Shown: positions 7,031-62,286 of the stretch, piece by piece
Layout: every line of letters begins with the position of its first letter
Position numbering within the stretch: position 1 is the stretch's first letter
Assembly (NCBI GenBank): GCA_965649765.1
Contig: OZ287752.1
Coordinates: 42,160,001 to 42,224,000 of the forward strand
Source of the DNA: Bispira polyomma
Taxonomy: Eukaryota
Reading direction: 5' to 3'
DNA: 64,000 nt
The notes under the pieces: generated by a model
The model's database searches: none
What the model was told of the DNA's origin: nothing
The model's input: the letters and a program-made list of their open reading frames with translations, nothing else
Translations under genes and position numbers: made by a program

Positions 7031-10000
7031 ATGAAGCTGCTGATATTGTTGGAGTTATTTGTTATACAGAATGTCTTACCTCAAACATTTGGTAAGTCAT
7101 TTCAATCTGAACACAAATAAACTAAGTAAAAAGAAGAAAACCCCTTTTTCCAGCTACTTTTCTCCATCATTCTATTCAACCATTTCTGAAAGGCGTACAT
7201 TTTCACAAAACTTAAATATTTAGCAGTATCAGTAATTTAGATAAATAACTGAACTAATTCATAAATATTCCAAATACATATATAGGTAGTTTATGTATTT
7301 GATGTCGTTTCTCTCTTCAGTGTCACAGTATTTTAGCTCCAATGTAGTTACTATTGCCTAATGGTTAGGGTTAGGTTTGATCTTGTGACCAGAAATTCCC
7401 CACTTTGATTTCCGGGTGGGGAAGTTGCCCCAAGTTCCACTCCCGCTAATGCCGCTAGGAGGTGGATATTATCCTTGGCCAAGAATGTTATAGACGCCTA
7501 TATAGACATATATTTCTCCACATGAAATACATCTACAATTTAACTTTTAATAAGATGAATAACGTCAATTATTCTGTAATGTGATTTACAAATATTATAG
7601 AGTCACCGATTTTATTAGAAAAGTTATATTACTAAAACTAAATGAAAGAATCAAACGTTTATCTTGTAAAACTTTAGATTCAGAGGAATTGTAGAAATAT
7701 AGATAGATATTTATATATATTTATTTATATATAACACCCTGTCTGACATGCAGGTAACTGTGAACCACTCTATAACTTGCAGATTACTGCTCCACCAGTT
7801 GGGACACTGCTGGCAGGGCTGTAATAGATAAGAACAATATGGTAAGTCCTGGGCTGGTCAGGGCAGTGGCGGTGTACTTCTGTCAGGCTCAGCAGGTGGA
7901 GCTACAGCTGTGGCAGCCAATACAGGGTCTGGAGTACAGAGTGGTGTGGAAGAGGGCAGTACAGCCACCCACTGAGTTGCCTGGCAGGTCTCTGGTATGT
8001 GTAGTTTATTAGTTTATAATGTGTGGGTTACTTTAAAGTGGTCTTCAGATGTAGGCTTCAGGAAACTGCTCATATCACATCTGTATCAACTCGTTATTCC
8101 GCCTAAACATTTGTCTGCTTGTCATGACTGAACTCTGATCACAAACCTTTTTCTCCTATCAGACCTTTACTTTTACATATTGACTGGTTTGTATGTCACA
8201 GAGGATGCTTGGTCGTCGATTGTGGTGCAATAGAAGTAAAACATTTACATTATGGGTACATCATAAAACATCAAAGTTTGATCATTCTTTCAGCATTGCT
8301 ACATACACCGAACAAAACATAAAGGTTTTAAGTTTATTCTTGCATATTTATTATGCACAGGTAAATCTGGACACAGAGGATCAGATTGAATTAAGCAGTG
8401 AAACTCGAATAGGCCTGTATGCCATGTCCAGTGGTACAATCCCTGTAGGCACTGTCTTCTACGCCGATGGATCCAGGAAGGTCAATCCAGCTGTTACTGG
8501 TCGAACAAACTACCAAGTGGGAGAGACCTACCTATTTGATGATATTCAGTATCCCTATGAATTCTATGCCCAGGTCTGCCCAGAATATGGTAATTTTATT
8601 TACAGTTATACATTAGGCCAATGATCAATATATTTGGCTTACACGTCTGTATGTTTTGGGTTTAACATTGCTTTTAACACGTTTTGTTATATCACAATCG
8701 GCAGTTCACTAGTGGTGATGGAATACCATGGATAGGTGGTCTGCATAACCACTGTTCTTCAGAGAGTCATCTGCCACAATTCAGTCCGGGCCTAGATTAA
8801 AACCCATGACTGCAGAGGTGGGAAGCGAGTGTGTTACCACTACACTTTCAGGCCCCCTGCATTCCTATATGACAAACGCATGAAGTTTGCTTTCTGCAGT
8901 TAGTGTTATACGACTAACTTATTAAATTGGTTCACTGATCCGTCAAAAAGTGCCACAATTTGCTATTGACCAAACCCAGTAATTGAGGGGCTCTTCATTG
9001 GCTTAAACATAGCTAAGTCTGTAGCTTAACTTGGCCTGAGTTAGATAGTTTGTCTCTCTTTTGTCTTTTTAGGAGAGTACACATCCATTCATCAACGCAG
9101 TTCTTTAATAAGCAAATAAAATAATTGTTCAGGCCCATGTGTAACCTTTTCCCCAATGTCTAGTAGGTGCCATGATTGTTTGACACAATATTGATACAAT
9201 ATATTTCAATACAATGAATGGCTATTAAGATTATGCTGACATTTTGATATGATTGCGTAACATAAAAAAAGACACCAATATATCTATTTAGCATAATTGC
9301 CCATTACCATCTTAATACTGCTGTTGTGACTAAAGAGTCAAGTATGTAGAAGTTAGATCAACATTGTTTGTGTATAATGTAACTTCCATTAAAGTCTATG
9401 TAATGAGATGAAGCTCTATCTATTTCAGATTGTCAGGAGAGGGTAGATCCAGTTTTACCACAGATACTTCCTGGTCTTATACCAAGTGAATTCTGTAAGT
9501 ACAACCTGCACTAGCTTTTATGATATAATATTGTAACTTTTTACTTAGTCTAAAAGTCCATGCAGGCAAGCCCAAATGTGTAATAATAGAAGTAGAACCA
9601 ATATTATCCGAACACGTTGAGAGGGCTAGCTTTAGTTTGATAATAAATCAAAATAGGCTTTTCTGTAGGAAGTTTACAACGCGAAGACAAAAATTGTGAA
9701 TGTGGAAATGAGTTAAAAAAAATCACATACTCTGTAAAACAGAAGTTAATACAATAGAGGTTCTACTGTATTATCCCCTCATAATCGTTTCAACGATTGT
9801 AACAATGACTAAAAGACTTGTAATTTCTACCACTTTTGGACACTGTACAATGTGGGTATTATACTATATAAAGCCACAAATAATACAGAATATATTCCTT
9901 CACAAATATTATTAGTTAGTAATTCCCCATACATATTGGGGTATGTTTCATGTAAGCAAGTGCATGTAAGTGTTTGTCACATTCATAATGCACTCTATCA

Positions 10001-13000
10001 GGGACTTTAAAAAATGACATCTTAACATGCACTCCATCTTCAGCATCCTGATTTCACCATACGTTTACAACATATTTGGTATAATTTAATTGCAGGAAAT
10101 AATCATTACATACAAGTTATAATAACTTGGTTGAGGTATGTTGAGGTATTAAGATGACATAATATACTTTCTGATTTCTATATAGGAAACTCTTGTTGTG
10201 TAGTTCAAAATAGGTTAGACAGAAGGTTTTATATCCTTCTGTGCACCTTTTTTTCAGTGGACTGTAGTGATAGGTTAATTGAAACTACTGGAAAGTCGGT
10301 GATTGAGTCAGAAAGGCTATTGCCCACTGGAAGATTCAGGGCAATAATAACTTACTTCTGCATTCAGGTGAGGTCAATAGTATTTTATAGTACTTTATTT
10401 AAAATAGAGTGATCAGTTGTCAGAACTTTCATATTCAGTTACATGTGGTGATTAAACAGTACATCAAATAAATGCCAGATTTTGTATTGTATAAGAGTTC
10501 ATCTTTCATACTCCAATCACTTATATTTTGCTACTTTGGACTAAAACTTTTAATAGTGTTCAATATCATATTTGGTTTAATGAATCAGTAGACAGTAGTC
10601 ATGTAATAATAGCCAGTTAAGATTGAAATTAACTAAATACTTGTAAAGATCAACCACTAACTTCATCTTCTTGACTAGACATGACAACCAAGAGCCTCTA
10701 CATGCTATAAAGCAATGCCCAAAGTCAGATGATGTAGATTGTACTAGTTTGCTGTCTTTCCATTCCCCTGTCTCCCCTCTAAATGCTATTATACAAGCCA
10801 ATGTCAGAGGATGTTGATTGTACTAGTTTGCTGTCTTTCCAGTCCCCCTGTCACCCCTCTAAATGCCATTATACAAGCCAATGTCAGAGGATATAGATTG
10901 TACTAGTTTGTTGTCTTTCCAGTCCCCCTGTCACCCCTCTAAATGCCATAATGCAATGCCCAATGTCAGAGGATGTAGATTGTACTAGTTTGTTGTCTTT
11001 CCAGTCCCCGGTCACAGTCCAAATCTGGGAGCCTTCACAAACTGACCACTATGTGTTGAAGTGGACAAGGACCTTACAGCCATCAAGAGAGCTGGGTAGA
11101 AGAACTGTGGTGAGTGAGTCTATATACTGTCCCCAAATAATTGCTATTTACCCTGACAATATTAGGAAAGAAGAAAACAAAACAAATCTTACAGTTTAGC
11201 TATCTAGAATACTTCAGACAGCCAGTGCTATGTATCCAAAATCTACGAATACATGCCATCTTTGTGCAGACATTTTATCACATGGCCAGAATTTAAGTTC
11301 AAGGTTATCTGATATTTTAATTTCTAAATAATAACCAATTCATGTCATTGAGTGTAATAAACTTCCTCTTTGAATGTCAATATTTATCAGTTGTAATGTA
11401 ATTTTTAGGAGAGTATGTATCCATTCATCCAAGAAATATACTTCATGAATAGAAATTTGACAGGAATACAATTAAATTAACTTTCAATTTCCAATGACTT
11501 TTCTGAGATTTATTTTCACTGTGTGGTATTTCTATAATCACTAAATTAACTTTCAGTCAACACAGGCAATTATTATTCAGTATCCATGCTCCTTTGCCAA
11601 AATAGCTTATACTTTTAAACAATAGCCCTGGTACTTAAAATGAGATGTCTATGTGTATCAGAGCTAAGGCATGTCAATGATGTGTTTTAAGTTTTATTCG
11701 GAAGCCTGTAATCCTTGTCTCTGTATGAAGACTAGCAGGGAAACTAGTGTATTCAGCAACTGCAATGTATTGACTCTAACATATCAAGTTGTTATACTTT
11801 CAGTTTCCTATTGAAGACTCTGACTCTTTCTCCCTCTCCTCAAACCACAGACTGGGTCTGACATCTAGCGACCCTATCACCCCAATCCCTACCATGTTTA
11901 TCATAGACCGGGCAGATGTCATCATATCTGAGCTATCAGGGGACTTCATCAAAGACACTATGTATCAGTTTGATAGCCTGGATTTTCCATTTGAGTTCAG
12001 AATAGCATTTTGTGGGACAACAGGTAAGCTAATTATGTATGCGAAACAATTTTCTTCATTACAGAAAGAAGAATCGAGTTCTCACACATTCTGAAAATGT
12101 GTGAGAACTTTAACAAACGTCTGAGAACTGGCCAAAAACAGGGGTAAAACTGGGGTAAATTTGGGCAAACGGCAAGAACAGGAGCTACAGCTGGAAATTT
12201 TGAACATGTTTAAAACTTCTGTGGTGGACAGCTCTGAAAGAACATCTTGAGAGAACTTGAGGAAACAGCAATGCAGGGGCGATGTCAGGCGTAAACGAGA
12301 ATTGAACTGCTTAGAATTTGTGTAAAACTGCTTAAAACTTGTGTGATCTGGCCAGAACTGGAGAGAACTTAAGAAAACGTAACATAACCTTGGCATAAAC
12401 TGGGGTAAATGGGGCTAAAACGGGTCAAAAACGGGGGATGCAAATATATGCAAATGCAAATGAGCATTTTCCTGCCTTTTCTCTTTCTTTTACTTGAGTA
12501 AACGACAATGCCGGGGCGATGCCGGGGCGATGCCGGGGCGATGCCGGGGGCGATGCCGGGGGCGATGCCGGGGCGTGAACTTGGACAATGTGAATGCACC
12601 ATAAAAATAAAAGGGCCCTGTAAAATAATGCACTTTTGTACGGTAGATATACAGCAGGAACTCTGCATGATAAGTCACTTAAGTGCTGAAATAATAGTTT
12701 GGAATATCTTTCTATTTACTGACAGATTGTTCAGCTGAACTGACAGATCCTACAACAACTTCTACCTTTCCTACATCTACATTACCTGACACTACAGTGA
12801 CCACTACGGGAACAACGACTACTCAGACTACTACATACACTACTACTACACCAAGCACTACAGCATCTACAACAGCTGAAACCACCACATCCACTAGTTC
12901 TACCACTACTGCTACTACACCCAGTCCTACAATTACCACAACACAAAAAGTAAGTGGCAATACCAGGCTCTCTATTGGCTTTGGCTGGGATAGATTGTCA

Positions 13001-14510
13001 GTATGGGAGATTTTTACAATGTTCTTTGGCATCATTTCGAATGTAATTCCAAATGTATCAGTAAATATGTAAATATAGTTTCTCATGTTACTAATTCACA
13101 ATTTTTGAGAAGTTGAACTTGAAATAATTTTTACTATTGGTAATTTTTAGGCAATATATCAAGTTTATATTTCGTAGGACTTTTCACCATCCCAGCTTAT
13201 TATCTAAACTTAACTCCTGGTGAGAATTTCCTTTTAACAAAGCAAAATTAACTGAAACCACTACTAATATTATAAGCTGCTGGTGTTACCACTGCAATGT
13301 GTATAACATCTGCTGAATGTCATTCTAACAGACAGAGCCAGGACCAGTAGGAGACACAGGACCACCTGGATCTAAAGGTACAGTGGGAAATACAGGTGTC
13401 AGAGGACCACCTGGTAACAATGGTCTAAAGGGTGAGTCTGGTAGTCCTGGAGATACCGGTAACCAAGGCAACAGAGGACTGAAGGGACTGGCAGGGGATA
13501 CCGGACCAAATGGACATCAAGGTGGTATTGGTGATCCAGGTTCACCCGGATTACTTGGCCAATCTGGTGCTCCATTTCTAGGTGTGTGTTCTTGTGTATA
13601 TCTACACCCCTTGTCATTAAGGTGTTTACTCTTTAGGAGATTCTTAAATGCCAGCAAAAGTTTATAATCCTTGGTACTTTTAAGTAAATACTGTTTCAAG
13701 TGAAGTAAATCTGTCTTCTGATGATAATTTATTAGTAGCAGCTTATTAAAGATAAATGTTTTTTCCAAGTTTATAATTAAAGATACAAGTTTTTACAAGT
13801 TTAGGACATCAGACAAGATTATGACAACCTGTGTAAGGGTACTAATGTGTAAAAAGAAATTAAGATACCAGTGGACATATATATAATACATACACTAATC
13901 ATGACTGCAATTTAATTACACCTGGAAATTCTCACATTGCAAAAAGTATATAAGATTGTATATAAGAGTATAGAGTTACTCTTTGGATGTAATTTAAGTA
14001 GTATGGTTCTTCAAAAAGTGAACATTAATGTGGAATCTTACCTATACATAACTTGTAAAACACCCAATGGTATACATTCTACTCAATACGCGTGCATATG
14101 CCAAAGATGTATGCTTGCCTTTTCCTATAGTTCCTGTAGTGACTCTTCAACTATGAAGGATAGTTCAGTATGATCATTTTATCTAATATATAATACCACA
14201 CACCTTTTCTATCAGAAGCATGGACATTTTTTATCCATTAATACCCTTAAATGCTACAGATCTTGCTATTAGTCGTTTATCAAGGAACATCTTGAACTAT
14301 GGTATGTGATTTTTCATATAAATGCTGTACCCTGCTTTTTACTTGTATGTCATTGTTTCAGCTGCTCTAAAGGAAGATTGCGCCTGCCACACGTTTCAGA
14401 ACAAATACCTGATCCTGGGTCTGATTATCTGGGCCGTGGTTCTGACATTGTTGATTGTTATTGTCACGTGTATAGCTGCTAAAGACTCATTGGAGATGAA
14501 AAACAGATGA
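7031..14510 (+). CDS. Gene A: predicted type I membrane protein with signal peptide, 2 uncharacterised QIW domains, Thr-rich stalk, collagen (Gly-X-Y)26 and C-terminal TM (541 aa)
   Basis: Exons 7031-7091, 7783-7994, 8361-8589, 9429-9494, 10258-10367, 11005-11109, 11804-12023, 12726-12949, 13332-13581, 14362-14510. All junctions are GT-AG with consistent phases; total 1626 nt with no internal stop. N-terminus MKLLILLELFVIQNVLPQTF is signal-like. TM is YLILGLIIWAVVLTLLIVIVTCIA. Confidence 0.85.
8040..8250 (+). mobile_element. L2-clade LINE 3' end fragment
   Basis: Matches the reverse complement of the 3' end of the LINE at 58220-58440 (cacatctgtatca.ctcg ... cacagaggatgc.tggtc..cgattgtgg.gc.atagaagtaaaa). 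Confidence 0.6.
8655..8857 (-). mobile_element. tRNA-derived SINE
   Basis: The minus strand has a tRNA-like head (gtgtagtggtaacacactcgcttcccacctctg) and the tail type seen in the window's other SINEs. Similar to 44146-44372. Confidence 0.6.
9590..9768. mobile_element. pogo/Tigger-like MITE (degenerate)
   Basis: Ends agtagaacc ... ggttctactg followed by TA. The left TA is not intact. Confidence 0.45.
10701..11015. repeat. ~80-bp tandem repeat (~4 copies) overlapping the gene A exon 6 splice acceptor
   Basis: The core gtactagtttg(c/t)tgtctttcca recurs at 10741, 10820, 10900 and 10982. Confidence 0.9.
12040..12601. mobile_element. Probable Harbinger-like non-autonomous remnant with G-rich 11-12 bp repeats
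   Basis: The right end tgtgaatgcacca is followed by TAA. Six units of (cg)atgccgggg(g) lie at ~12508-12575. The left TIR is not recognisable, so the left boundary is approximate. Confidence 0.4.
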
Positions 14511-15039
14511 AGACAGAGGCTGACTGTTTTAGTGCTATATATCTAACTATCGAACTACAATTAACATCTATTATATGTGTGACATGTTATTGGACTGTTT
14601 CATTATTTTTGATTTACTTCTTGTTTGGTGTACACTTACTGTTGTAATATATGGACCAGTGTTCTAATTACATGTGAAGAGTATGTTGTCTATATTTAAA
14701 CATCCTAAATACACTTCTGTAAAATAACTTGAAATTACTGTTCACTAACTTGTTTACATTCACTGAAATTTATACATTCAGTCTGAATTAGTGACGCCAT
14801 TGGTTACCAATATTTGGACTTTACCATCAAAAGAGATTTCATGTAATTGGCCCTCATTCAAACCTAGATGTAATTCTGGACCTCTATACTTATACGGTAC
14901 ATTGTGTTTTTGGAGTTAATTTGAAACGTCTTAGATTGTATTGCGATGGCCACATTTATTAGTATAGGAAACGAATAGTATGGGATTAAGAACTACAATG
15001 CAAATGACGTGGTAATCACTGTGGTCTTTTACCACCGAG

Positions 15040-15540
15040 CCACTGCAGTCAGTTTAATACTAGTCTCACTCTTTCAGAATTTAGTTTGGTTTTACATTGT
15101 TTTCAACAGTTTTGTTCATATCATAAGACTCCTTTTCTTAAAAGGTTTCGTTGGTTACCTGTCAAGTACCACACCATTTTTAAGACCAATGTTGTTACTA
15201 CATACAAAGCTGTAAACCTATGTCAGCCCCCATACCTTGCCTCACTGTTGTCTTTCAGCAGGCTTGTCAGGGGAAACAGAATTTCAGTCTCTGACACTAG
15301 AACTAGTAAACAGATTGGATCCTATGCCTTCTCTGTCGCAGCACCTACTCTATGGAATAATTTATCAACCAATGTACGATCCAAGGAAACCTCTCTGGCT
15401 TTAGAAGTAACCCAATCATGAATTTGCTTTGGAAATGCACTACGATTTTTACAACTTTGTCAATGATGTTGTGCTTTAGAAGATGCCAGGCATCAATTAG
15501 GCGGGTTAAAACTCTATCATATCAAATATTGTATTATTAT
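15040..15540 (+). mobile_element. L2/CR1-group LINE 3' fragment (decayed)
   Basis: Translation RWLPVKY..IFKT..TTYKAV...PPYLASLL...GSYAFSVAAPTLWNNL is typical of the C-terminus of L2-type ORF2. The tail gtgctttagaagatgccaggcatcaat is shared with the copies at 25305 and 31074. Confidence 0.75.
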
Positions 15541-15716
15541 GACCGCCAGATTCTATGGTGGAAGAAACCAGTGTTAAAGAACTGTAAACCACCGACCTGT
15601 GGCAAGTCCCTAACAAACTTTATCACATAAAGAAACAAACAGGATTCAAACCCACATTGGTAAGAGGCCAGTGATTTGAAGCAGGTGCTTGTAACTACTA
15701 ACTCACCATGGCCCCC
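15541..15716 (-). mobile_element. tRNA-derived SINE (MetaSINE-like body)
   Basis: Homologous to 40970-41140 and 43279-43476 (ttacaagcacctgcttcaaatcactggcctct...gggtttgaatcc). Confidence 0.7.
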
Positions 15717-16624
15717 ACAATGACAAGTTAGGTTAAAAAATCATGTCCGCTCCTGATAGACTGAAGAAAATGTTGACAAAATTTATTAGGAACCAGAAGC
15801 TCATGATAGACATCTTGATGACTCTTGGATAATCTACACGACTTGTCACAAGTCAGCTTGCAGCAGGTTAAAAAAACTTAAACAAACGTTTTGGGACATT
15901 TGTAAGAACTCTTGCATGTACTTGCATTAGTCATGAGTCACACAGAGTTCAACTAGAGCTATCCAGAGTTGACATGAGGATTTTCACCGAGCTGCCTGGA
16001 GTCAGTCCGAGCTAAGCACGACCTACAGAGTTTATCAAGAACTGCCCGAGTAAGGTGTCCCTTTTTAGTATATGACTTGTCAAGGAAGCAGAATTAACCA
16101 AGAGTTAGGACTCAGTCTTAGTCTGCCTTTTCCGGCATAACTTGGCGAAACTTTGCTTTGTGTGTGAGGGTAGCTTAACTGTATATATTTGAGGTATTAT
16201 CTCACATGAAGTTAACTACAAGAGTACCAGCCCAGGTATTCAGGGTGTGATATCAACGAATTTGATTTTTATAAGATTCACTGGTCTTTTGTGGCCTAAT
16301 GGTCATGGGTTTGACCTTGTGCTGTGATGGTCTCTGGTTCAACTTCTGGTAATATCACATTGAATGTCGGTTGATAACTTGCCTAATTCAAAATGTGAAC
16401 ACATAACTGCCTATTGATAATGACCGATGATGTGGTGTAGGATCCAACCCCTTCATGGAGAGCATAGAGTTATATATCAGCACTTTATTTTATCTAGTTA
16501 TATATTTAAAACAATGATCAAGAGTTTCTTGTTCCTTGGACACAGAATCCTTTGACAAGCCTAGATTTTCTTCAAACCCAACGCAATATGCATAGTTATT
16601 GTAATGCCATGATACAATTTGAAT

Positions 16625-16820
16625 TTAGTAGGGTTTTATGTCGCTTTCAACAGCTTAGGTTATACCTCAATGGTCAGATTTTAACGTGGCAGAAACCAGT
16701 GTTAATGTGCTGTGGACCATGGCAAGTACCTGACAAACCTTCCCACTTTCCGGCAGTTCGAACCTACGATGGTGAGAGGCCAGTGATTGTGAAGCAGGTG
16801 CTTGGAACTACTGAGCCACT
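16625..16820 (-). mobile_element. tRNA-derived SINE, same family
   Basis: The minus strand has gtggctcagtagttccaagcacctgcttcacaatcactggcctctcacc...ggttcgaac and the tail cctaagctgttgaaagcgacataaaac. Confidence 0.7.
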
Positions 16821-18696
16821 ACCATGATACAAAGACCAGGATATATTTACATATAGTATTTATCACAAGGTCATCAACGCCTTAAAGTACAAAAATCTCT
16901 ACTTCCTGTAGTTGTAAACTGCACTGTAAATACTTTTAATCCTTTATTTTCACAAATAGGGTTATCGTGTGAAGGTCACTGCAGAGGTCACAAACCTCCT
17001 CAGAATCTGCAAGGTTACTGTAAATCTTTACCCTGCTATAACTGTAAGCTGTATGCTACACATGTTATATATACTGGACTATATAGTTAAAGGAGGCCAA
17101 CACAGGAGAAGTGAGTAACCGCATAGCAAAACCATCTGTAAAAACCCTTTTTGCCTTGAAACATTCTTCTGGAGTGACAAAGTAGTATGGAAAAGACCCA
17201 GATACTAATAAATCTCTCTATGTGAGTACAACTTTATACCATGGACCATATTCATTAAAGGGCTAGGTTTTAAGTTTAACATTTTTGGTCTTTGATTTTG
17301 GCTGAAAAGTCTTAGATTTTGGTCCTGGTGACTCTGTGTTAACTTTGCCTAAATATTTTAGACATTTTTGTTGACCTTTGTAATTATGGCCCCTGGATTT
17401 TACTCAATCAAATGCATTTTCACAGGACTTTTTATCCACGTTATTTAACATATAATAAAATACACCAATAGTATACAGTACCCTGGATACATAATTTTAA
17501 AAAGACTTTCACACAAAGTACTGCATATACCAACAGTTTTCGCTTCTTTGAATGCATACAAATTAATGTAATGACTCGGGGTTTCAGTCAGCCGTTCTTA
17601 ACAGTTGTATTTATTATATTTATGTTCTTCAATTTTATGGGTGTTTTTATGTTGCAGAACTTTACATTACATCTTTATGAAGAAATATCAATAACCATTA
17701 TCATTTTTGCGTTTTATTTTCTCTTTTCTTTCGATTGTCTGTCATTCTTTATGTGGCCTAAAGTCAGCTGTATACTTTTTATGGCCACCTTTCACCCGTT
17801 GTTGCGTCAATAGTAGAATTCACCTTGTGTGTGATTTATTTTGCCTTTCAACAGAAGGTAAATTGTAGTGTGTATTAAAATGGACTGTCAATTACACACA
17901 CCTATATACATATGTGTGTTGGTAGAGAATAGATTTATAGAAATACATTGTACTGTAATGTGTATAACTGACATGCCAATTTGGGCAAACACTAAATATT
18001 AAATTGACCTTGTAATTCTAATTAAGGTCTGATAACATTATTCTTCGTGAAGAATTTTACTGAAGTATACAACTGATATTTGTGTGGTTATATGTTTTCT
18101 TCCATCTAGGATAAAACATTATTTTAAGAATTTGGACCCTATAAAAGATATAAAGCCGCCCATAAAAATAGTGATTTATATGCAAGTCATGACCAAGTCC
18201 TCGTTTAAGACACACAAAATGCAGTAATAAAAGTTATTCAAAACACAAGTTTATGAATGTCGAATTTTCTTAGTCCAAAACATTATCCTTTATTACTTTA
18301 CTACTAGTCTTGTTATTTATTGATGTATAATGATTTCTTGAAAGTGATTTATTTTTGTAACAAAGTTTCTTACTCTTGTGTGTGAATTGTTAAATGAATG
18401 TCTGGCTAAACTAGGTTATTGGAGATTGCAACCCCATTGCAATCTGATATAGCAATTGCAAATTCGTATAAGGTGTCATTATACATTCTTGTAAATAACT
18501 ACATCTAGTACAATTTCCAACTACTTTTTGTGTGTTGCCAATGTTTTAGTCTTTGTCTGAATGGCATACTTTTAGCTAAACACAAACCAAAGTTAGAACC
18601 CAGGTCTTCAGCACTTGTAATATGCCGGGCATAGACTATGGTGTCACAAAAAAAATACATTTTGCATTTTCTTTATTTTAGCCTTTATCTGAATCA

Positions 18697-19564
18697 GCTG
18701 CAGTATAAGGGCCATAGAGGTACCTAAGTGAGAAACATATCTACTATTTTTTGAGCCATGTAAGTACCTGGGTGAGAAACCTCCTGTAGTATGTGGGCCA
18801 TGTAGGTACCTGGGTGAGAAACCTGCTGTAGTATGTGGGTCATGTAAGTACCTGAGTGAACAACCTCGTATAGTATGTGGGTCATGTAAGTACCTGAGTG
18901 AGAAACCTGCTGTAGTATAAGGGCCATGTAGGTACCTGAGTGAGAAACCTCGTGTAGTATGTTGGCCATGTAAGTACCTAAGTGAGAAACCTCCTGTAGT
19001 ATGTGGGTCATGTAAGTACTTGAGTGAGAAACCTCCTGTAGTATGTGGGTCATGGAGGTACTTGAGTGAAAAACCTCCTGTAGTATGTGGGCCATGTAGG
19101 TACTTGAGTTAAAAACCTCCTGTAGTATGTGGGTCATGGAGGTACCTGAGTGAGAGACCTCCTGTAGTATGTGGGTCATGGAGGTACTTGAGTGAAAAAC
19201 CTCCTGTAGTATGTGGGTCATGGAGGTACCTGATTGAGAAACCTCCTGTAGTATGTGGGTCATAGAGGTACCTGAGTGAGAAACCTCCTGTAGTATGTCG
19301 GTCATGGAGGTACCTGAGTAAACAACCTGATTAAGTATCTGGGCCATGTAGGTACCTGAGTGAAATACCTGTTGTAGTATGTGGGCCATGGAGGTACCTG
19401 AGTGAACAACCTCCTGTAGTATGTGGGTCATGTAGGTACCTGAATGAGAAACCTCCTGTAGAATGTGGGCCATGGAGGTACCTGAGTGAGAAACATGATG
19501 TAGTATGTGGGCCATGTAAGTACCTCAGTGAGAAACCTGCTGCAATATATTGGTTATGTAAGTA
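18697..19564. repeat. 42-bp minisatellite, ~20 copies
   Basis: Consensus cctgagtgagaaacctcctgtagtatgtgggtcatggaggta. It produces the 263-aa minus-strand ORF of 14-aa repeats. Confidence 0.95.
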
Positions 19565-21555: not shown

Positions 21556-21998
21556 GTGAACGTTTCCATGCAGGCAACTTTCTGAGGCGACCAGCCGACG
21601 TATAACAGGCAATTTTCAATTTTTATGTTTCTATACAATATTTGAGAAAAATCGATACCTGTATTTAAACCTGAATATCTTAGCCATTTCTCAACCGATT
21701 TTGATGCAACAAAAAGCACAATATACCCGATAAAATAAGCTTTCTGACCATATTTTCATTAAATTTATACCTTTAGTAATTTTTGAGTTATTTAATAAAA
21801 CGGCAATGTTTACAAGGCGACGGGCAATGCCAGGCGATTTTTTTTCACTCCTAGTACCGAAAAAATCGCCTGGCATTGCCTGTCACCTATCGGCATTGCT
21901 CACATGGAAACACTTGGTTATAAATCAATGAAATTGGTAGAATCGCCGTCGGCCGTCGCCTGATCGCCTCAGAAAGTTGCCTGCATGGAAACGCACAC
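21556..21998. mobile_element. PIF/Harbinger-like MITE
   Basis: ~35-bp near-perfect TIR gtg(aa/tg)cgtttccatgcaggcaactttctgaggcga. TTA TSD at 21553-21555 and 21999-22001. Confidence 0.85.
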
Positions 21999-22840
21999 TT
22001 ATGGAGGTTGGCGACAACCTCTGTAAAATAAATGGTACCCAGAGTTTGCACATTCATGTATGTCAACGTCAGACTGTCAGTGTTTATAGAAAATGGGATT
22101 TTAAAAGGGTTCTATTATTTGAGGGTGTAAATTCTGAAGTCAGTTAAGACTCATTATGGTTGCAGAACTATACTATAAACCTACACTTTTACATTTACTT
22201 TGTTTCAGATACTTTTTCAGTGATTTTGCAATGTTCCTGAAAATGAGCCCATATATTCAGGTCATACATACGGGTACTTCACAGAAGACTAAACAAACAA
22301 AAACTGTCTTTGAAACTTCCTTTTGACACCCGTAAACAACCAAAAGACTGATCAACAAAGCAGAATGAATGATACCCTCCATTTCTGAAATCTCTATAAT
22401 TATTTAAACTCTTAGCTCTCCCCCCCCCCCGCCCCCCCCCCCCCTTTCCCCCAACACAAAGCGACCTGACAGACAATAGGGGTCTATTTTCTAAACAACA
22501 GATCATGTTCCTTTTGTTACACATTGTTTTGAAGAGATCTTGGTGGAGTGGCTTTTTGACCAGTTGGTGTCACTTACCTGGAGAGTAAATAACCTTTCAT
22601 TGGCAACGTGACTTTTCCCCCTTGTCAGTTTGTAAAATAAATATGTTTTTCTCAGGCTTAGTTTTTCATGTGTTTAGATGGTAAATAACCACTCGATGGC
22701 ATGATTTGCTTTGTTATATAGCCTCTCAAAGATTCATATTTAGAAAACTAAACACTAGTTTTACAACTGACTTTTTATATTATATATTTAGCACCAAATT
22801 TGTGACAATATATGCCAAGATATATTGATATGTTGATACT

Positions 22841-24248
22841 TGTTTTATTGTGTGTTTACGTAATGGGCAGAATATGGGATGTCATTGTACACAGGTCCTT
22901 AGTATAAACCTTTCACCGAAAATCTGTAATATTTGAAGACCCCCTCCGGTTTTTGTTTTTCATTTGGTGTTCTCCAAAAGGGTTTGTTTTAAAGCATCTG
23001 CTTTTATAGCACTAGCGTCTCACCTCTAAGGCCAGTGGATTTAAAACCTACTCTTCGATCATATTTTATCCCAGGAATTTATCAATCCAGAGACCATATG
23101 CATCAATATTCTCAAAAGACAATATTTACAATTTTCCAGCCCTGATAGCACTCTGTCTGATCCTACCCAACTAGGCCGATGAAGATCATAGACTACCTCC
23201 TGACCACTAGACTCAAGGAGACATAAATACTGAGCCTGGATAAGGCTATATATTAGTAGATAAAAAAAACCCTTAAAGATAGTAATTTAGGGCCGACAAA
23301 AACCCCTCTAGATCTCAAAGTGGAGTGGCATCAAACACCAATGGATGTATGGAGAGCCTGTTACACGTGTCTCTGGGAACGAGATAAACACCTCTTCTTT
23401 TGTTTTGTAACATTTCATTTACATTTCACATTGTTCTATAATTACTCAAAAAGTTGTCGATAGGAGAGGGATGATATATATGATACTGCGACAAAAACGT
23501 ATTGGATTATGATAAGGTGTCACTTTGATCCTTTCTAGTATGACTTCAAGTTGACTAGCTGCCAATTTAAATGTAAGTGACCTTAAAGTCAACTCAATGC
23601 ATTTTGGAGAGTAGATGAATTGCAAGAGAATGGACCTAGGTTCTATCCCCGAGTCTACCATAAAAAACTGTTGGTTATGAGCTGCCTATGTGACTACATC
23701 CCATTAACCTTGGGGACACTGATATATAGTAATCCCCAAGGCTGTATGTTAAACTTAATGAGGGCAAAAGAAGGCACCAAACAAACAGGATAGTATACTA
23801 ATAGAAAAGTGTTGATATATCAGTGATATAGTGTGCAACTGTGTATTGGATGTAACAAATGGGCATCAGTGCCACCTAAAAGTTACCTTCTAAATCCATA
23901 AAAAGTGGTGAGATAATAAATGAGCTATTATATTATTTTTATTCCCTCACATGTGTCATTTTCATGGATTTTAGTCAGGTTTTAATACCATATAATCACA
24001 CATGGTTGGGGGACGTATTTTAGTTTCAACTCAACTTACACTGCCAGATAAATCTGGAAGTTAATGGTTAGCCTTAGTCCTTCAAACCATTGTGTCGGAT
24101 GTGATCTATATCTGTTTTATTGTGTGTTTATGTAATGGGCAGAATATGGGTTGTTATTGTGTACAGGGGCTTGAAATGGCTATTTATGACTGAAATATAC
24201 CACAGGTCCCTGGTATAAACCTTTCACCGAAAATCTGTAATATTTGAA
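22841..24248. repeat. Pair of ~100-135 bp direct repeats (22841-22938 and 24113-24248)
   Basis: Both copies read tgttttattgtgtgttta(c/t)gtaatgggcagaatatggg...tataaacctttcaccgaaaatctgtaatatttgaag. The second has an extra ~38 bp. Confidence 0.85.
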
Positions 24249-24581
24249 GGTCTCCATTTGTGAGAGCTGACTTGTTGGATCTTTGCATATTGCATTGTGT
24301 TAGAAGAGAAACTGCATGTCTATAAATTTGGAACAAAATTGTACATAAACTGATCACAAAAAAATCTAAGGGAATAAAATATAATATTCAAAAATTTAAA
24401 AAATTATTATTATTTTTTTCAATATTTTAGATTACAACTGGGTCAGGCAATTGGATATATATAACCTAGATACACTTAGTCAATGCAAACTGTCACGTTA
24501 TCCTTGACCTCGATTGGGCCTGTACTTTGAAACTACATTGTTAATGGATGTGTAGACAGTAACCATAGTGACGTCACAAAG

Positions 24582-27500
24582 ATGTGGTGTTATTCCGTGT
24601 CATGGATTATCTTCGTTCTCAACATAGGATTTGTTTCCACTGAAGGTAAGTCTACGATAAAATGTAATATCAAAACAAAATGACCAGTCAAAGTGTCACA
24701 GTGCCAAAAAAAGTGAAATTAAAAATTTATCATACTCGCTTAAAAAGTTACTGGATCCATATTTAACCAAACTCAGTCCCTACAACGAATTCGATGTTGT
24801 TTCTGGTTTTGTGCTATGCTGGTGACAAATAAGCAAACATACATAGAATAAAATATGACCTCCATGGTTGATATAATTAGTGTAGTTCTATTACAAGTGT
24901 ACTTTTGTTCTTTTTGATATATATTGTGCAAAACATGTGTGTATTTTCCACTTATGGGGGTTTTCAGTGAGACTATGGAATGTTGCAAAACAGTAAAACT
25001 AGTACTATACTTGAGTATATATGGAAAAATATATATGACATTTTCTTAAATTATCAAATTGTGATCCTGGAACAATTCCTTATAAACCATAATACAATGT
25101 ACAGAGATTTTACAGTAAAGTACATTGTATTTACATTAAACTCGGTTTATTTAACTACCTTTATCTGGACAGTGGTCATCTAATCCACTATGTATTATCT
25201 GGCAGTACCTGGGAGCCCAGGTTGTGATCGAACCAAGGTCCTCTGTGTTTCAAGGGAGTGTATTACCCGTAGTGGCAGTATGGGATATGTGACTAAAATA
25301 ATTTTATTATTATTATGTATTTTTAACATGCTTTATTGATGCTAGGCATCTTCTAAAGCGCAACAGCAGAATCATTGATCCAATCATAGAGCCCATGGGC
25401 ATAGCAAAGTTGTAAGGGTACGGGGGTTAACAGCTGGTTGATCAGCAAGCAACCACACCGAGTGTTAACTCACCCCGTAGCATCCGGCAGCAAGAGGCGC
25501 AACTCCCTTTCACGCTTCACATGGTGAAGGGTGCCGTAGCCTAATATTCTTAGTCATACTACCAATTTGTTCAAGTAAAATGACAAAATACTAAAAACAG
25601 TGTCAGTACTACAAGGTCAAAGTCAAACCATACTCAAGTAATGCTTTTGCAAAAGTCCCAGATGACAGATAAAGAGGGCTACCACACGGCTATCATTACT
25701 TGGTGTGTTTGTCATCCGGTTGTAGGTATCCTAGGACAAATAGGGGAAGCTTTCCAGTCAGAAAAATTCAAAGATACAGAAGTCAGGGGAATCTTCCTCT
25801 CCACACATGCTGTATACAACCTCCTAGTTGATGCTGCCATCTATCGGTTCCGGGCCTATGTGTTGTTGGTGCATCCTGTACGGTTCCAAATCTGGAGACC
25901 AGTAAGAAATGGTCTCCAGGAATACAGCTTGGTGGGCCAAGTGAGGCTTCAGCCCAGATATACAGACAAATTTTATAATGTTAGTATAACCTCTGCATTA
26001 ACAAAAAATTTCAAAAATCTTATTTGTAAATTGGCAGAGATTGCATGAATCAGTTTACTTTTCGCCAATATTCTCATTCGGCTTTGAAAAGTTGAGCTTA
26101 CATTGTCAAACCAAATCTGAACATTTTTTAAAATTATTATTACTGTAACTTCTTTATTACTGGCAGCTTTGGAGATTCAGTGAATGCTAAAATTCCATAG
26201 AAGGACCTAAAAAACAGACTTAAGTTTTGTCCTTCAAATATAACTTAAAATACATACCTTGTTAAAACTTACATTGACTATTATTTACTTTTAATGTACA
26301 TGTATAACTAGGTGTCGGTGCCCAGACAAAGTCCAATAATAGTCAAACAAGGGGACATACTGGGCGTATTTAATGAGGAAGAGGGGTGTGCTTTGGCTTA
26401 CCAGTTCCAGCCATCTGGGAAATCTGGATCATGGCATTCAGACAGAGAAGAGGGGGTTACCATTGCAACAGGAGAGAGACGAATGTTTGACTCGATGCTG
26501 CTTCCTTACACGTTTTCTGTAGAAGCCTTTTATGACACTGGTATGGTATTTTTACAGCTATGATGCCTCTATTAAGACAAATATAACAAAAAATGTAAAG
26601 CAAGTTCAATTATTGTGTAAAGTCTAAGTATTTGTTAGTATTCTCCTTACAGAAAAGAATGTATATTTTTGTTTCTATGTATATTCCTCCAAACACATTA
26701 CCGTCCATAATACCAGATGGATCACTATTCATTGAGTTATTTTATTACAAAACAATGGAATGCCAGTTTGGGGATATTAAAGTATATAATTATTTAATTC
26801 ATAATTTGAAGATATCTATGTTAGTTAGATATGTCTGATATTATGAATCCGCACAATGATCGCCATAGTCAAATCAATGTATAATAAACAATCCAGACTG
26901 ATTCACTTTTGCATTCATTCACTTTTCATATGATGCACTGTTTGTTTTTAACTGCCACACACAGTTCTCTCTTGTTAACTTAAAGTCGATATTGTCATAT
27001 ACATCCTTTTTCAGATACATTGAAATATTTGGGACCATTTGAATCAGAATCCACAACAGAGGAGAATGAACTGGAAGGCCAAACAGAGGAAATTCCTGTG
27101 GTATCGGGGAACCTTAACTACACGGGCAACTCTCTGGCTAACAGAGATCAAATTATGTTGAAAGATGCTAGGGCCATGTACCTCTTCCCCGGCATTCGGT
27201 TCACTGATGGTGTGGTGGTGGAATTCCATGCATTCTTCGGAAAGAAACAGCAAGTAGTGTTCCAGATCTGGCGGCAATACAGTGCTGATTCCTATGCACT
27301 TGTAGGCTCATATGTTCATTTGCCTCAGAATGTGCCAGCATATGAAAGGGTGGGTACAAGCAACCTGACTGGTTGTTACATCTTAACTTTAGGGCTTAGT
27401 ACAGTTTTTTTACAAAAATGCCAAAAAGGTACTATCAAATTAACTGAAACCATGAGCCTGTCTGGGATGTATCACTATTATGTTTTCATATTAGCCGAAT

Positions 27501-30500
27501 TTCTAATAATATCCTTAATTTTTGTGTCATATGCATATTCATTTGCAAACACGGCTGTTTGCAACATTTTAATCCTGTTTGTATAGTGCATAATGTTCAG
27601 ACAGAACCTATGTAGTTATACATACATATAGTATAATAACAAGTTATAAAACATGGACAGTATGCATAAATGTGGAATACGGCTAATATCATTGGCCATA
27701 CTTTTTGCTCTTTGTTAGTACTTCTTTGTACAGAACTTTTTCACTTAGAGCCAAACAGTATTTGGCTGCATCAAACTGAATAACAAAATGCTTCCACCCC
27801 TTTTCAAATAACATGACACTAATTTATATTTAATTCAACAGAACTAGAAGCCAATATATCTAAAGTATGTTTTACCCATTTAGATTTTGACAAACACCAT
27901 CAATATACATTCTAATTTGAGATGATTTCTATAACTTCCAGGTTACTCTTTCCCTTGGAAGCTTCATATTTGTCCAGGATAGAGACATTCTTGGAGTAGC
28001 TTTCTTGAGTAATGTGGGTCCCATAGCCTACAGAATGACAGGATTCGAAGGGGACAGTGGGCCACACGTATCCAGCATTGTAAACAACAGACTACCAAGT
28101 ACTGGCGAAATTGTCAAATTTGGGACAACTCATCTCCCTTATGACTTTGCAGTTGGAGCCATTTATGACACTGGTACAGACCTGTACAACTTAACTCTAT
28201 ATATGATCTCAAGTTCACATATCTTTGTACTGAATTAACACTAGCTGTACACCTCGTTTGGAGTCACACATCAATTATATTGTAAACGTTTACCATTACT
28301 CTGCATACTTCAATTTGAAACAAAACAGATTTTGCTTCATGAATGTAGACAATGATAATCAGTACACTTGATCAATATATTACACCTTACCAAAAAATAT
28401 CTGTAGTTTAGCATACATAGTAATAAGTGTGTTACTAAATGCATATATGATCATTTACTTGCAGACACAGATCCTACAAAGTATGGTGAGCCACCTTCAA
28501 GTGTTGTACCCGAATATCCTTCGTCACCCACAGCGGCACCATTCACACCCTTTTCTATTGAGTTACCAAGTGATCATCTCCTGCTGGGTGATACATACCT
28601 GTACAGAGCCCCATCTGTTATGTCAAAAGATGCCCAGAGATCCTTCATTCTATCAGACATAACATTCCCATCTCCTGGACTGGTTGTAGCCTTCCATGCC
28701 TATGTTGTCCAACCAGGAAGGCTCTACTTCCAAATATGGCGTCAGTATAAGAACAGTGGTAAACACTTTGAATTGATTGGCCAGAAAGGAATTAACTTTG
28801 AGGTTTCTGGTGTTGATAACTTTGAGCCAAGGCTGGTGGAAATTATTCTGGAAGACGATGAACAAATTCATGTACTACAAGACGACTTAATAGGTTTTGC
28901 CAATGGTCAGAATACTAGTGTAATTGGCTACCAGTTTACGTCTACATCAACTTTTTCTTCCCCTGTGGGAATCAATGCAGCCATTGGTGAAGTCATTACT
29001 TTTGATGACTTACCACTTCCTTATAAATTTTCACTTGCTGTAACATTTAAAAGAGGTAGGTTTTCTGTGGTGACTTTATTTTGTTATTGGCTCTCATTGA
29101 TACTATTTAATAGTTTTAGGTTTTTTAGTTTATTTGGGTAGTTGGTCTGGTGATCAAAAGATACAGGATTCGACTCCTAGTAGGGCCACAACGGTCCTTC
29201 ATTGATAAGATCCTTAGACAGATGTGAACACACTTTTGCCCACTGGCCCTGATCAATTTGCTATGTACTAAACTAATGACTAATTTCTTTAATGTTAATA
29301 ACATTGCGCATCTATAGGGCATGATAAAATGTAATATACACAAACACAATATATAATCATAGTTGTAAGAACTCATACACTTTTAAATTAACCAAATTTT
29401 TCAAATTATCAAAATCCAGCTAGCATGTAATAAATATAAAAAGGAAAATGTAAAATAAACACAAGCAAATGAAGCAGATTGAGGTTTAAATTTGTATTGA
29501 TTGACTATTTTAAATATTTGAAAGATGAGGTGACAACTCAGTTAAATGGCCTTGAGAGCAGCTCCATTGATGATGTCACTGAGGGCCGCAGTTCCATTGA
29601 TGACGTCACTGAGGGCCCACTTGTAGGGAAACTGGTGGATACAACTGGTAAGTTCACAAGGCAGGCATCTTAAAAGTTATCCAAGGCAGTGGTGTGGTTT
29701 TTAAGCCTCTCACTAGGTGAATCTCAAGACAAGACTGACAGATTCTTGTATTTTGGGATGCCTTGTGCATATTTAGTTATGTATTTATACTACTTAATTA
29801 CGTTTTAATTATATTTTTTATCCTTTCACTTATCCCTTCCTCGTGGTTTAGAAAACAAAAAATATGTACAGTAAACACAATTTTGGTCTCAATGGCCTCA
29901 CGGTTAAAGTGTTCAACTGTGAATCAGGGGGTCCTAGGTTCGATCCTCGCTGCAGGCCTGGAGAATGTACCATTGGGCAAATACTTCAAATAAAGTAGTC
30001 TCTCGCCTCCCAGATGTTGGCTGTTGCTGGGTCTTAGTCTCTGTGTCATATGTGGCAGCATGGCTAGTACGCTCCCTTAGCCTAAGCTTCCTTTCAGCAT
30101 GTTTTCCCTCATTACGCAATACTATTGAGTGCTTCCTTTCAGCATATTTGCATCAGATCCGATCAAACGTCGGTCGACATCTGTTTGGCCAACATATTTT
30201 ATCTGCCAGGGAGAGGAAAAATCGGAAGGACTGTCTGATTTTGACACAAAAATGGCTGCAAAAACACTGTCATGGGTATAGTTTTTATCCTATATATACT
30301 CGATATTCGTTAGATGTTAACTTTAAAAAATGACATGAGAAAGCTTATTTTATTGTGATTACTGTGCTTTTTGCCAACAAAATCCGTTGAGAAACGGCTC
30401 AGACATTTAAGTTTATAGACGGGTACCTCTTTTAACTTCCGCTTCTGCTGTAAAGAATACATGACAGCAATGTCATAATGACGTCAGTTTTGTAGCTACG

Positions 30501-31875
30501 TCGGAAGTAAAAATGGGTACGCTTGTTTAACTCTATATATCTCGGCTGTTTCTTAACGAATTTTGTTGGATAAATCACAGTAATCACAATGAAGTAAGCT
30601 TTCTCATGCCATTTTTAAAGTCAACATCCAACGAGTTGTGAGTGTATATCGGATGAAAGAAAGCACAATGTCGGCCGATGTGAGATAGGATCGGATACCT
30701 TCAAATCGACCGACGTCAAAATGTGCTGAAAGGAAGCGTAGGCTTTGAAAGCTGAGATTCTCAGCCTGAGAGTGAACAATTCGTTGAAAAGTAAAAGTGA
30801 CTTGTCTGGGGGTGTAAACTGTGTACATCGCTTTGAGCTACCAGGAGAAAGCGCTATATAAATTGAAATTTGCATTTAAATTTACATAGATAATTTTTGA
30901 CATCTTGACAAGAAACTTTCACAACTTTACAAATAAACCTATTGTATGAAAATATGGACATCAAAATTATCATTCTAAATTAATGTGTAAATTAAAGCAT
31001 CAACTCAAATAAAAATCATTGTTGCAACTTTAACTGTCTGACATATGTAATTTAAACAGAGTAATCTAAACCATTATTATTATTATGAATTTTTAACACG
31101 CTTTATTGATGCTTGGCATCTTCTAAAGCACAACAGCAGAATCATTGATCCAATGACAACCAGTACTGACATCATCACGTTTTTTAGATATAGCAACTGA
31201 AATCTGATTTGTTTTAACAAGTAAATGTTTCATAAGGTAAGAAGTAAACTAAAAATTATACAATAGAAAATCTATTGTTATAGAAGAATTTATAAAGTGC
31301 CACGTAGATTATCCACCAGAAGCTCTCGGATCATCCCTTGCACAGAGAATAATAAAGACAATGATTTAGGCTACATCTGAAAAATACAAAAACATTTCTT
31401 TGTTCTTTCAGAATCATTTTCGTGGATTATGGATGCCAAGATACTATTTGGTCTGCTGATCTGGTTGATTATACTGACTGTTCTGTTCTTCATGTTGCTG
31501 GCCTGTTTCCTCTGTGGTATCCATAGAAAACCCTCTGTTCAAGATGAAAACAAAAGACCCAGCTTCTTGTATGACTACCAGTCTAAAAACAGTGTGGCCA
31601 GAACTCCCTCGGATTACCTAACCCATAGCCCAAATAAGGAAAATGACGTGTTGAGCTATTTTAATCCTAAGACCGGAAGTCGAAGTGGGCCCGTCATGCG
31701 CAATGACTCGATGAGAGAGCAACTGATAGGAAGTGACGACACAGATGACAACAAGTATGGGGCTTCTGGGAATGTAAACAATAACAACAAGAGGCCTGAG
31801 AGTGTGTACAGTGATTACAGTGACGGCACTGTGACAGTAATCACTCACCATGGGGACCTCCATACCCACATGTAA
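24582..31875 (+). CDS. Gene B: predicted type I membrane receptor-like protein with signal peptide, 3 uncharacterised QIWR domains, acidic stalk, TM and ~118-aa cytoplasmic tail (763 aa)
   Basis: Exons 24582-24645, 25726-25979, 26312-26540, 27015-27349, 27942-28173, 28465-29055, 29525-29647, 31412-31875. Junctions are GT-AG with consistent phases; total 2292 nt open. N-terminus MWCYSVSWIIFVLNIGFVSTEG is signal-like. TM is ILFGLLIWLIILTVLFFMLLACFLC. Confidence 0.85.
25305..25545 (-). mobile_element. 5'-truncated L2-type 3' end with structured UTR and (TAA)n tail
   Basis: The tail matches 15460-15540 and 31074-31154 and ends in aataataataa on the minus strand. Confidence 0.6.
29885..30863 (+). 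mobile_element. tRNA-derived SINE with L2-like tail, split by a MITE insertion
   Basis: A-box tggcctcacgg at 29893 and B-box ggttcgatcc at 29937. The body is interrupted at 30080-30743. Tail cgctttgagc...aaagcgctatataaat. Confidence 0.6.
30080..30743. mobile_element. PIF/Harbinger-like MITE (copy 2, inverted relative to 3457-4154)
   Basis: TIR gcctaagcttcctttcagca ... tgctgaaaggaagcgtaggc, with flanks TTA / TTT. Colinear with the reverse complement of copy 1. Confidence 0.8.
31074..31154 (-). mobile_element. Short L2-type 3' tail insertion
   Basis: Near-identical to 25305-25385. Confidence 0.65.

Positions 31876-60270: not shown

Positions 60271-62286
<2,016 letters not shown>

Follow-up and report, generated by a model that had tools for sequence, protein, structure and literature searches.

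Two adjacent genes in a stretch of DNA from Bispira polyomma carry repeats of an ectodomain that has no name, which raises the question of what kind of proteins they encode and whether these work as a pair. The stretch (GenBank assembly GCA_965649765.1, contig OZ287752.1, positions 42,160,001 to 42,224,000 of the forward strand; 64,000 nucleotides, subsequently designated the window, with coordinates counted from its first letter) is AT-rich animal DNA with a GC content of about 36% and zero runs of N. We designated the two genes A and B. The analysis suggests that A, B and a third paralog, Z, located upstream of the window, probably belong to a multigene family of type I single-pass membrane glycoproteins, in which lectin-like heads would bind a ligand and the cytoplasmic tail of B would relay this binding.

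Gene models and the common head domain

Reading the window in three frames with splice sites recovered A and B as separate, intact genes on the plus strand. Gene A, established by splice-site reading with script-checked junctions, extends from 7031 to 14510 and comprises nine exons (1560 nt; 519 codons plus stop). Gene B extends from 24582 to 31875 and comprises eight exons (2292 nt; 763 codons plus stop). In a script check of the modelled exons, every junction in both genes was of the GT-AG type and the phases were consistent. Introns between heads are in phase 1 and introns within heads in phase 0, as expected for shuffled extracellular modules. The exon models agree with the layout described in a first-pass annotation of the window, i.e. 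two adjacent genes on the same strand, each opening with a signal-peptide exon that ends in phase 1, with two heads in A and three in B; head 2 of A spans three exons. The same holds for the Thr-rich segment, the collagen and the tail of ~10 amino acids (aa) ascribed to A (11 aa in our model), and for the collagen-less B with its ~118-aa tail (120 aa in our model). No G-X-Y run is present anywhere in gene B.

The unit common to both genes, called head in the following, measures ~135 residues and is largely cysteine-free. It occurs in one to seven copies per protein, many proteins carrying two to seven, as determined by local iteration of a hidden Markov model (HMM). In an alignment of 39 copies (A1) the W and R of FQ[VI]WR, an L and the D of GDxxG are invariant, accompanied by a near-terminal PYxFS and an LVG motif. 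Head 3 of gene B (exon 28465-29055) served as query for all domain searches and for fold prediction, and all searches as well as the fold were based on single exons, the spliced proteins being unjoined. Pfam returned no match at E≤1 in the gene B head and no consistent match across the 39 copies, and the head profile had no match among PDB sequences, in agreement with the earlier statement that the common ectodomain is unnamed. A hit to AbrB (E 0.8, head profile against PDB sequences) was rejected as chance, and weak Pfam matches to Glam1, Comm, TMEM154 and PRIMA1 stayed below the cut-off and were regarded as noise from transmembrane (TM) composition. When Pfam was run on all exons of A and B, Collagen alone passed.

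Among 1.84 billion proteins searched, 35 representative proteins carried the head domain at E≤1e-3. The named carriers among annelids belong to Owenia, Capitella and Dimorphilus and are all uncharacterised proteins; outside annelids, Tubulanus (nemertean), Lingula (brachiopod), Babylonia (gastropod) and Glandiceps (hemichordate) are represented. A six-frame search of the present genome with the 39-copy alignment detected at least 29 exon-level head matches on eight contigs. The head domain is thus a domain of several invertebrate phyla that is unnamed and absent from Pfam; the suggestion of a lineage-specific pair, which accompanied the first-pass annotation, does not survive this distribution. 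A profile word search with the domain alignment yielded three short proteins only, and the ESM Atlas neighbours of the head were unnamed sponge and annelid clusters, which we treat as a lead only. In the library searched we found no paper on these relatives, none naming the accessions or the two run/assembly identifiers, and nothing relevant on transmembrane collagens, on lectin-like heads or on PHR or galactose-binding domains.

Conservation was assessed for gene B, whose head 3 retrieved by word search P0001, an open reading frame (ORF) on a 22-kb contig of another species (locus L001). DNA and protein similarity between the window and L001 was restricted to the exons of gene B and one downstream dehydrogenase exon. 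The contig of the second species begins 1.3 kb before gene B, and it includes an equivalent candidate for the signal-peptide exon. Exon-wise ratios of non-synonymous to synonymous divergence (omega, Nei-Gojobori) ranged from 0.07 to 0.32 at a synonymous divergence (dS) of about 0.8-2.2. The exon encoding the TM helix and the tail was the most constrained part, with 85% aa identity as compared to 56-58% for heads 1 and 3. These values indicate that gene B is conserved exon by exon in the second species, under purifying selection. All heads of gene B keep the W-R and G-D residues and are recognised by the family HMM at E 5e-42 to 9e-10.

Gene A carries more divergent heads, which the family profile recognises only in part. 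Both keep the W of the family, and the R is replaced by Q or E and the D by T or H. In the window search the HMM matched the two halves of head 2 weakly (E 0.86 and 0.19) yet in colinear order. Head 2 requires the exon 10258-10367, because exon 8361-8589 ends in phase 1 and cannot be joined in frame to the strong phase-0 acceptor at 11005. By eye, the peptide encoded by exon 10258-10367 is similar to the start of the head 1 exon 7783-7994, the comparison being unscored. The following exon, 11005-11109, is identical in start, end and phases to exon b of the upstream paralog Z. Its acceptor is duplicated by an 80-bp tandem repeat (10719-11009), the upstream copies of which represent cryptic acceptors. 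We also considered that head 2 begins within this repeat, where L-L-S-F-Q can be read as a strand; this start was rejected because Z possesses an exon with equal limits and exon 10258-10367 closes the frame. L-L-S-F-Q corresponds to the translated polypyrimidine tract plus the CAG of the acceptor. Short-read unitigs break at the same repeat.

In the C-terminal half of gene A, the Thr-rich exon has alternative acceptors at 12735 and 12747 that are likewise in frame. The collagen exon matches Pfam PF01391 with E 3.8e-10 and 39.8 bits against a cut-off of 27.2. The predicted TM helix follows about 17 residues past the collagen and is itself followed by basic residues, the stop being reached 11 aa on. 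Three public runs contain the stretch, all of them DNA unitigs; in these, the exons of gene A showed not a single difference and the unitigs were colinear with its introns. A word search with exon 8361-8588 detected no ortholog of gene A, which is weak evidence as this search covers proteins of 42-133 aa sharing exact words. Within the 2.5 kb past the stop (14511-17010) neither AATAAA nor ATTAAA occurs, as compared to about 4.9 occurrences expected from their frequency in the window. Support for gene A consists of nine open, phase-consistent exons in AT-rich DNA and of its paralogy to Z.

Further observations concern the surroundings of the gene A exons. Past the stop only the variants AATATA (14646) and AATACA (14708) were seen. 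One intron contains a high-copy repeat (12100-12700), in which unitig depth is 100 to 1000 times that of the flanks and which includes an 11-bp microsatellite at 12508-12575.

Architecture, orientation and the upstream paralog

In full-length Pfam searches, the relatives from Owenia, Tubulanus (two genes) and Lingula displayed Collagen followed by cEGF or EGF_CA, located C-terminal of the heads. Hydropathy analysis assigned a single C-terminal TM helix to the proteins of Owenia, Tubulanus, Lingula, Capitella and Dimorphilus and to P0002, P0032 and P0035. This helix has the consensus GLIIWLxxLTL, of which the W is present in 12 of the 13 aligned sequences across phyla; A, Z and B all carry the motif. 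Collagen is lacking in gene B, P0002 and the proteins of Capitella and Dimorphilus, and two hemichordate proteins have neither TM helix nor collagen. The sequences suggest a common plan of signal peptide, heads, (mucin), collagen, (EGF), TM helix and tail, i.e. a type I orientation, and the collagen-stalked members of the family are accordingly predicted to be type I membrane collagens. The view that A and B are cell-surface proteins is supported in that both read as type I, and the relatedness of their TM helices is borne out by the TM alignment.

The orientation sets the family apart from the collagenous membrane proteins covered by a 2021 review. The membrane-associated collagens whose triple helices are interrupted (MACITs), ectodysplasin A, colmedins and class A scavenger receptors are described there as type II, their cytoplasmic part being N-terminal (PMC7848082). 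The MACITs (XIII, XVII, XXIII and XXV) and the collagen-like receptors resemble the present proteins in being single-pass and in having a collagen triple-helix stalk, and several of them bear a non-collagenous recognition domain at the far end; they are trimeric, high-avidity surface binders. Gene A, however, has its signal-peptide-like exon at the N-terminus and its predicted TM helix on the C-terminal side of the collagen, whereas a type II protein has a signal anchor that precedes the collagen. Several collagenous domains separated by NC domains and a furin-type shedding site are further marks of the class; A has a single, uninterrupted collagen run. Moreover, in contrast to the collagen-like receptors, the head of the present family is N-terminal and unnamed, and is not an SRCR, CTLD, olfactomedin or TNF-like domain. 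Proteins with C1q/TNF heads likewise differ, as their TNF-like jelly roll lies C-terminal to the collagen, whereas the heads are N-terminal here.

The closest matches in both head domain and domain order are Owenia fusiformis A0A8J1XLE8 (CAH1777351.1), Capitella teleta R7VG63 (ELU15286.1), Lingula anatina LOC106169885, Tubulanus polymorphus LOC141906210 and LOC141905155, and Dimorphilus gyrociliatus DgyrCDS10614-10617. The relatives from these five genera share the head motifs FQ[VI]WR, LVG, GDxxG and PYxFS, from which the heads of A differ by loss of R and D. The relatives from Owenia, Tubulanus and Lingula possess EGF modules, whereas A and Z have none. The earlier remark that no described family has this architecture is therefore correct insofar as no name exists, but the order heads-collagen-(EGF)-TM recurs in annotated proteins of other phyla.

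The third paralog, Z, lies on the plus strand at C5:42137090-42156063 (window positions -22911 to -3937), about 4-23 kb upstream of the window. Its model opens with a signal peptide, continues with a single canonical head spread over three exons and with exons for a Thr-rich part and for collagen, and ends with a CxC pair, the TM motif and a tail of ~45 aa; the 26 collagen triplets reside within a single exon. Exon b of Z, before which a separate phase 1-to-0 exon is located, starts with D-P-V-T-F-Q-V-W and ends with R-T-V. Z and A have the CxC pair in common and are near-identical at the start of the TM helix. A and B belong to a three-gene cluster with Z, so that the adjacency of A and B stands, but their designation as a tandem pair does not, given the third paralog upstream. 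Pairwise scores among second-half exons (17-54 bits) were too low to place A relative to Z or B. One intron of Z harbours an inserted non-long-terminal-repeat reverse transcriptase (Pfam RVT_1).

Additional family members are scattered over this genome, in which the heads-collagen-TM layout of the annotated relatives is found at four further loci. Loci on contig C7 encode one head plus collagen and the TM motif, and the segment C7:61115001-61175000 represents a local cluster with at least two family genes on opposite strands; in the plus-strand gene, a single exon encodes both the collagen end and the TM helix, and the tail measures about 140 aa. A locus on contig C1 combines one head with collagen, two EGF modules and the TM motif.

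Carriers with other architectures were noted in two genera. Babylonia areolata P0009 (1636 aa) has three head copies at the C-terminus of a mosaic protein, which otherwise comprises Astacin, ApeC, CUB, Kringle, Sushi, C-type lectin and ShK domains; such a composition accords with a secreted setting of the head domain, in recognition or defence. In Dimorphilus gyrociliatus, the records P0011, P0036, P0037 and P0038 share their first about 413 residues, which contain two heads, and are distinguished by their C-termini alone. Two of them (526 and 582 aa) have a TM helix and two (416 and 459 aa) have none, and the four records appear to be membrane-bound and secreted products of a single locus.

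Predicted fold, candidate function and alternatives

The fold of gene B head 3 was predicted by AlphaFold2 with alignment A1, resulting in an all-beta model with a predicted local distance difference test score (pLDDT) of 88.5 and a predicted template-modelling score (pTM) of 0.84. Structures were compared with Foldseek and subsequently with an exhaustive aligner, for which a background of Z 7-8 is quoted. The highest score was obtained with a cyanophage capsid protein (Z 11.0; 131 residues, root-mean-square deviation (rmsd) 2.8), followed by the lectin-like domain of Clostridioides Cwp84 (4ci7; Z 10.0; 128 residues, rmsd 2.9), phage baseplate and tail-tip modules (Z about 9), the carbohydrate-binding module (CBM) of acetylxylan esterases (7tog, 7toj, 7tok; Z 8-9), PHR domains (Z 6-7) and CBM32 and F-lectins (Z 5-6). 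A C1q/TNF-like head was rejected, as Foldseek template-modelling scores to TNF/C1q chains were 0.28-0.33 and BAFF reached Z 5.1 only. On the level of the fold, the model makes a lectin/CBM-like beta-sandwich jelly roll of the surface-recognition kind credible. The predicted beta-sandwich is what the head has in common with the Cwp84, CBM, PHR and CBM32 modules, and Lectin_like and PHR were also the nearest named families in a feature search. However, identity of the head to lectin/CBM modules, Lectin_like (PF18560) and PHR (PF08005) is 6-14%, and no Pfam profile matches. A fold class in common with lectins demonstrates neither homology nor sugar binding of the head.

The tail of gene B contains S-Y-F-N-P, which aligns with D-Y-F-N-P in the Capitella protein. 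Both proteins combine the collagen-less layout with the tail motif S/D-Y-F-N-P followed by G..S.P, and this combination is partly present in P0002. Y-D-N motifs occur in the tails of Tubulanus and Lingula. The contig encoding P0002 is 3.1 kb long, intronless and transcript-like.

How could such proteins work? The heads might recognise an extracellular ligand, for which a glycan or some other surface polymer is the likeliest candidate. The source of avidity would be trimerisation in A and Z, which are presumably trimers because of their collagen stalks, or the tandem heads in B. The common TM helix may drive oligomerisation, and the CxC pair next to the membrane in A and Z could staple three chains. 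The SH2 domain of Grb2 prefers pY-x-N. The tail of B with its tyrosine motifs, including Y-x-N-P, may relay binding into endocytosis or phosphotyrosine signalling. A functional analogy is offered by the tail of MUC1, in which the YTNP site is tyrosine-phosphorylated and required for internalisation (PMC5039420). The C-terminal subunit of MUC1 resembles B in its manner of working only, MUC1 being a mucin-stalked surface protein of type I whose tail is short and disordered. MUC1 tail fragments were also the nearest feature-space clusters to the last exon of gene B, at a similarity of 0.90 that has low recognition value and provides a lead only. B differs from MUC1 in having no sequence homology to it and neither a SEA domain nor tandem mucin repeats.

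Several points weigh against this reading. Signal peptides and TM helices are hydropathy calls only, and the topology was derived from sequence. Foldseek with the head model returned nothing at E≤1e-3, and Z scores of 8-11 exceed the background of 7-8 only modestly, so that the fold class is credible but lectin homology is not thereby established. Y-x-N is short and frequent in Asn-rich tails. The heads of A are without the invariant R and D, and A may therefore not bind the ligand of the others. Finally, no RNA run is among the public runs that contain the stretch. Taking these points into account, we still regard ligand-binding type I glycoproteins, with B as a tail-bearing member, as the probable nature of the family.

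Along the lines of the first-pass annotation, A and B might form a dedicated heteromeric pair, in which A, trimerised by its collagen, is the high-avidity binder and B the signalling subunit, connected through their related TM helices. A and B are indeed adjacent on the same strand at a distance of about 10 kb, their TM helices are related and their tails are complementary in length, but the TM motif is common to the whole family across phyla, the cluster contains with Z a further collagen-stalked gene that has a ~45-aa tail of its own, and the member on C7 unites collagen with a tail of about 140 aa in one protein. Moreover, the annotated neighbours within 10 kb of the Capitella B-like gene are unrelated (a transporter, DNA polymerase delta subunit 4 and NPRL3; this is from annotation, no scan of the flanks with the head HMM having been made), and no annotated gene within this distance carries a collagen or extracellular matrix Pfam domain. 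Word search provided no A ortholog, and the heads of A are devoid of the invariant residues of the family. We consider such a pair quite improbable, and the case for A as binder and B as signaller of a co-receptor is weak. Alternatively, the family might consist of structural anchors between membrane and matrix, similar to collagens XIII and XVII, whose stalk and heads would fasten cells of the epidermis or the muscle to the cuticle or a basement membrane, with the tails linked to the cytoskeleton. Most members have a collagen stalk, some contain EGF modules of the calcium-binding type that is usual in matrix proteins, mucin-like spacers are present in A and Z, and known membrane collagens function in adhesion (PMC7848082). 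This alternative is nonetheless doubtful, because B, P0002 and the Capitella and Dimorphilus proteins are without any collagen, the stalks are short (26 triplets), and the most conserved part of B is a disordered-looking tail with Tyr and Ser motifs and no recognisable cytoskeletal linker.

A different alternative concerns gene A only, which might be a relaxed or decaying paralog that is weakly or not expressed, or a non-binding decoy. The loss of the invariant R and D from both heads, a head 2 that is barely seen by the family HMM, the failure of word search to retrieve an ortholog fragment, the 2.5 kb past the stop free of AATAAA/ATTAAA and the duplication of one acceptor by a tandem repeat would be in line with decay. 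Nevertheless, its nine exons (1560 nt), located in AT-rich DNA, all keep an open frame with matching phases and canonical splice sites, its series of G-X-Y triplets has no break, its TM motif and CxC are preserved and closely resemble their counterparts in Z, and the blank in the word search means little given the restricted range of proteins which it covers. Decay of gene A thus appears unlikely. A bolder extension would make the family a type I membrane collagen class in its own right, with the helix nucleated at its membrane-proximal C-terminal end by the TM helix and CxC, and with collagen-stalked chains (A, Z) and the collagen-less, long-tailed B assembled through the same TM helix into mixed receptor complexes, which would read glycans by means of a lectin domain not described before; we regard this proposal as a long shot.

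If the family indeed consists of ligand-binding type I glycoproteins, an unnamed ~135-aa extracellular domain of predicted lectin-like fold would be added to the metazoan repertoire, with carriers in Spiralia and a hemichordate. As compared to the type II proteins of the 2021 review, the collagen of this family of several phyla would lie on the opposite side of the membrane anchor, and one may ask how such a helix is nucleated and stapled. For annelid, brachiopod and nemertean biology, the family offers candidate trimeric surface binders with signalling tails, possible roles of which are matrix attachment, symbiont recognition and pathogen recognition. With members present in Capitella, Owenia, Dimorphilus and Lingula, the question is open to experiment.

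Feature coordinates and neighbouring sequence

Table 1. Modelled exons of genes A and B and the tandem repeat at the gene A acceptor (window coordinates; phases, HMM E values and aa identity to locus L001 where available; TRF, Tandem Repeats Finder).
Feature	Position	Strand	Details
Gene A exon 1, ATG and hydrophobic signal-peptide-like segment	7031-7091	+	Donor G|GTAAGT; ends in phase 1
Gene A head 1, first half	7783-7994	+	Phase 1 to 0; family HMM positions 5-64, E 5.4e-5
Gene A head 1, second half	8361-8589	+	Phase 0 to 1; family HMM positions 63-135, E 3.2e-7
Gene A head 2, first exon	10258-10367	+	Phase 1 to 0; acceptor behind T-rich tract; donor CAG|GTGAGG
80-bp tandem repeat	10719-11009		3.6 copies, 92% match (TRF); at 3' end of intron, ends at acceptor 11005
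Gene A head 2, middle exon	11005-11109	+	Phase 0 to 0; HMM positions 31-69, E 0.86
Gene A head 2, second half	11804-12023	+	Phase 0 to 1; HMM positions 66-135, E 0.19; splice sites
Gene A Thr-rich, mucin-like stalk exon	12726-12949	+	40 Thr, 9 Ser and 6 Pro in 74 residues
Gene A collagen exon	13332-13581	+	26 G-X-Y triplets, uninterrupted; Pfam Collagen match
Gene A last exon	14362-14510	+	Juxtamembrane CxC, predicted TM helix with family motif, 11-aa tail, stop
Gene B candidate signal-peptide exon	24582-24645	+	ATG, hydrophobic core, phase-1 donor AAG|GTAAGT
Gene B head 1, first half	25726-25979	+	HMM E 4.6e-12; 58% aa identity to L001; omega 0.17
Gene B head 1, second half	26312-26540	+	HMM E 9e-13; omega 0.13
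Gene B acidic linker and head 2, first half	27015-27349	+	HMM E 7.6e-13; 73% aa identity; omega 0.12
Gene B head 2, second half	27942-28173	+	HMM E 8.8e-10; 81% aa identity; omega 0.17
Gene B Pro/Ser linker and complete head 3, one phase 1-1 exon	28465-29055	+	HMM E 5e-42; omega 0.24
Gene B acidic stalk exon with 30-bp tandem duplication	29525-29647	+	omega 0.32
Gene B last exon, predicted TM helix with family motif, 120-aa cytoplasmic tail, stop	31412-31875	+	85% aa identity to L001; omega 0.07

Between A and B, a 42-bp minisatellite is present in 19 copies (18757-19564), which gives rise to a spurious ORF of 263 aa on the minus strand. Downstream of B, the dehydrogenase exon mentioned above (36761-37096, plus strand) encodes part of a D-2-hydroxyacid dehydrogenase and is syntenic with positions 14554-14857 of L001. 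The remainder of the window contains an ORF for a Myb/SANT-like DNA-binding protein (48164-48610, plus strand) and an actin exon (60274-61059, minus strand; Pfam Actin, E 2e-100).

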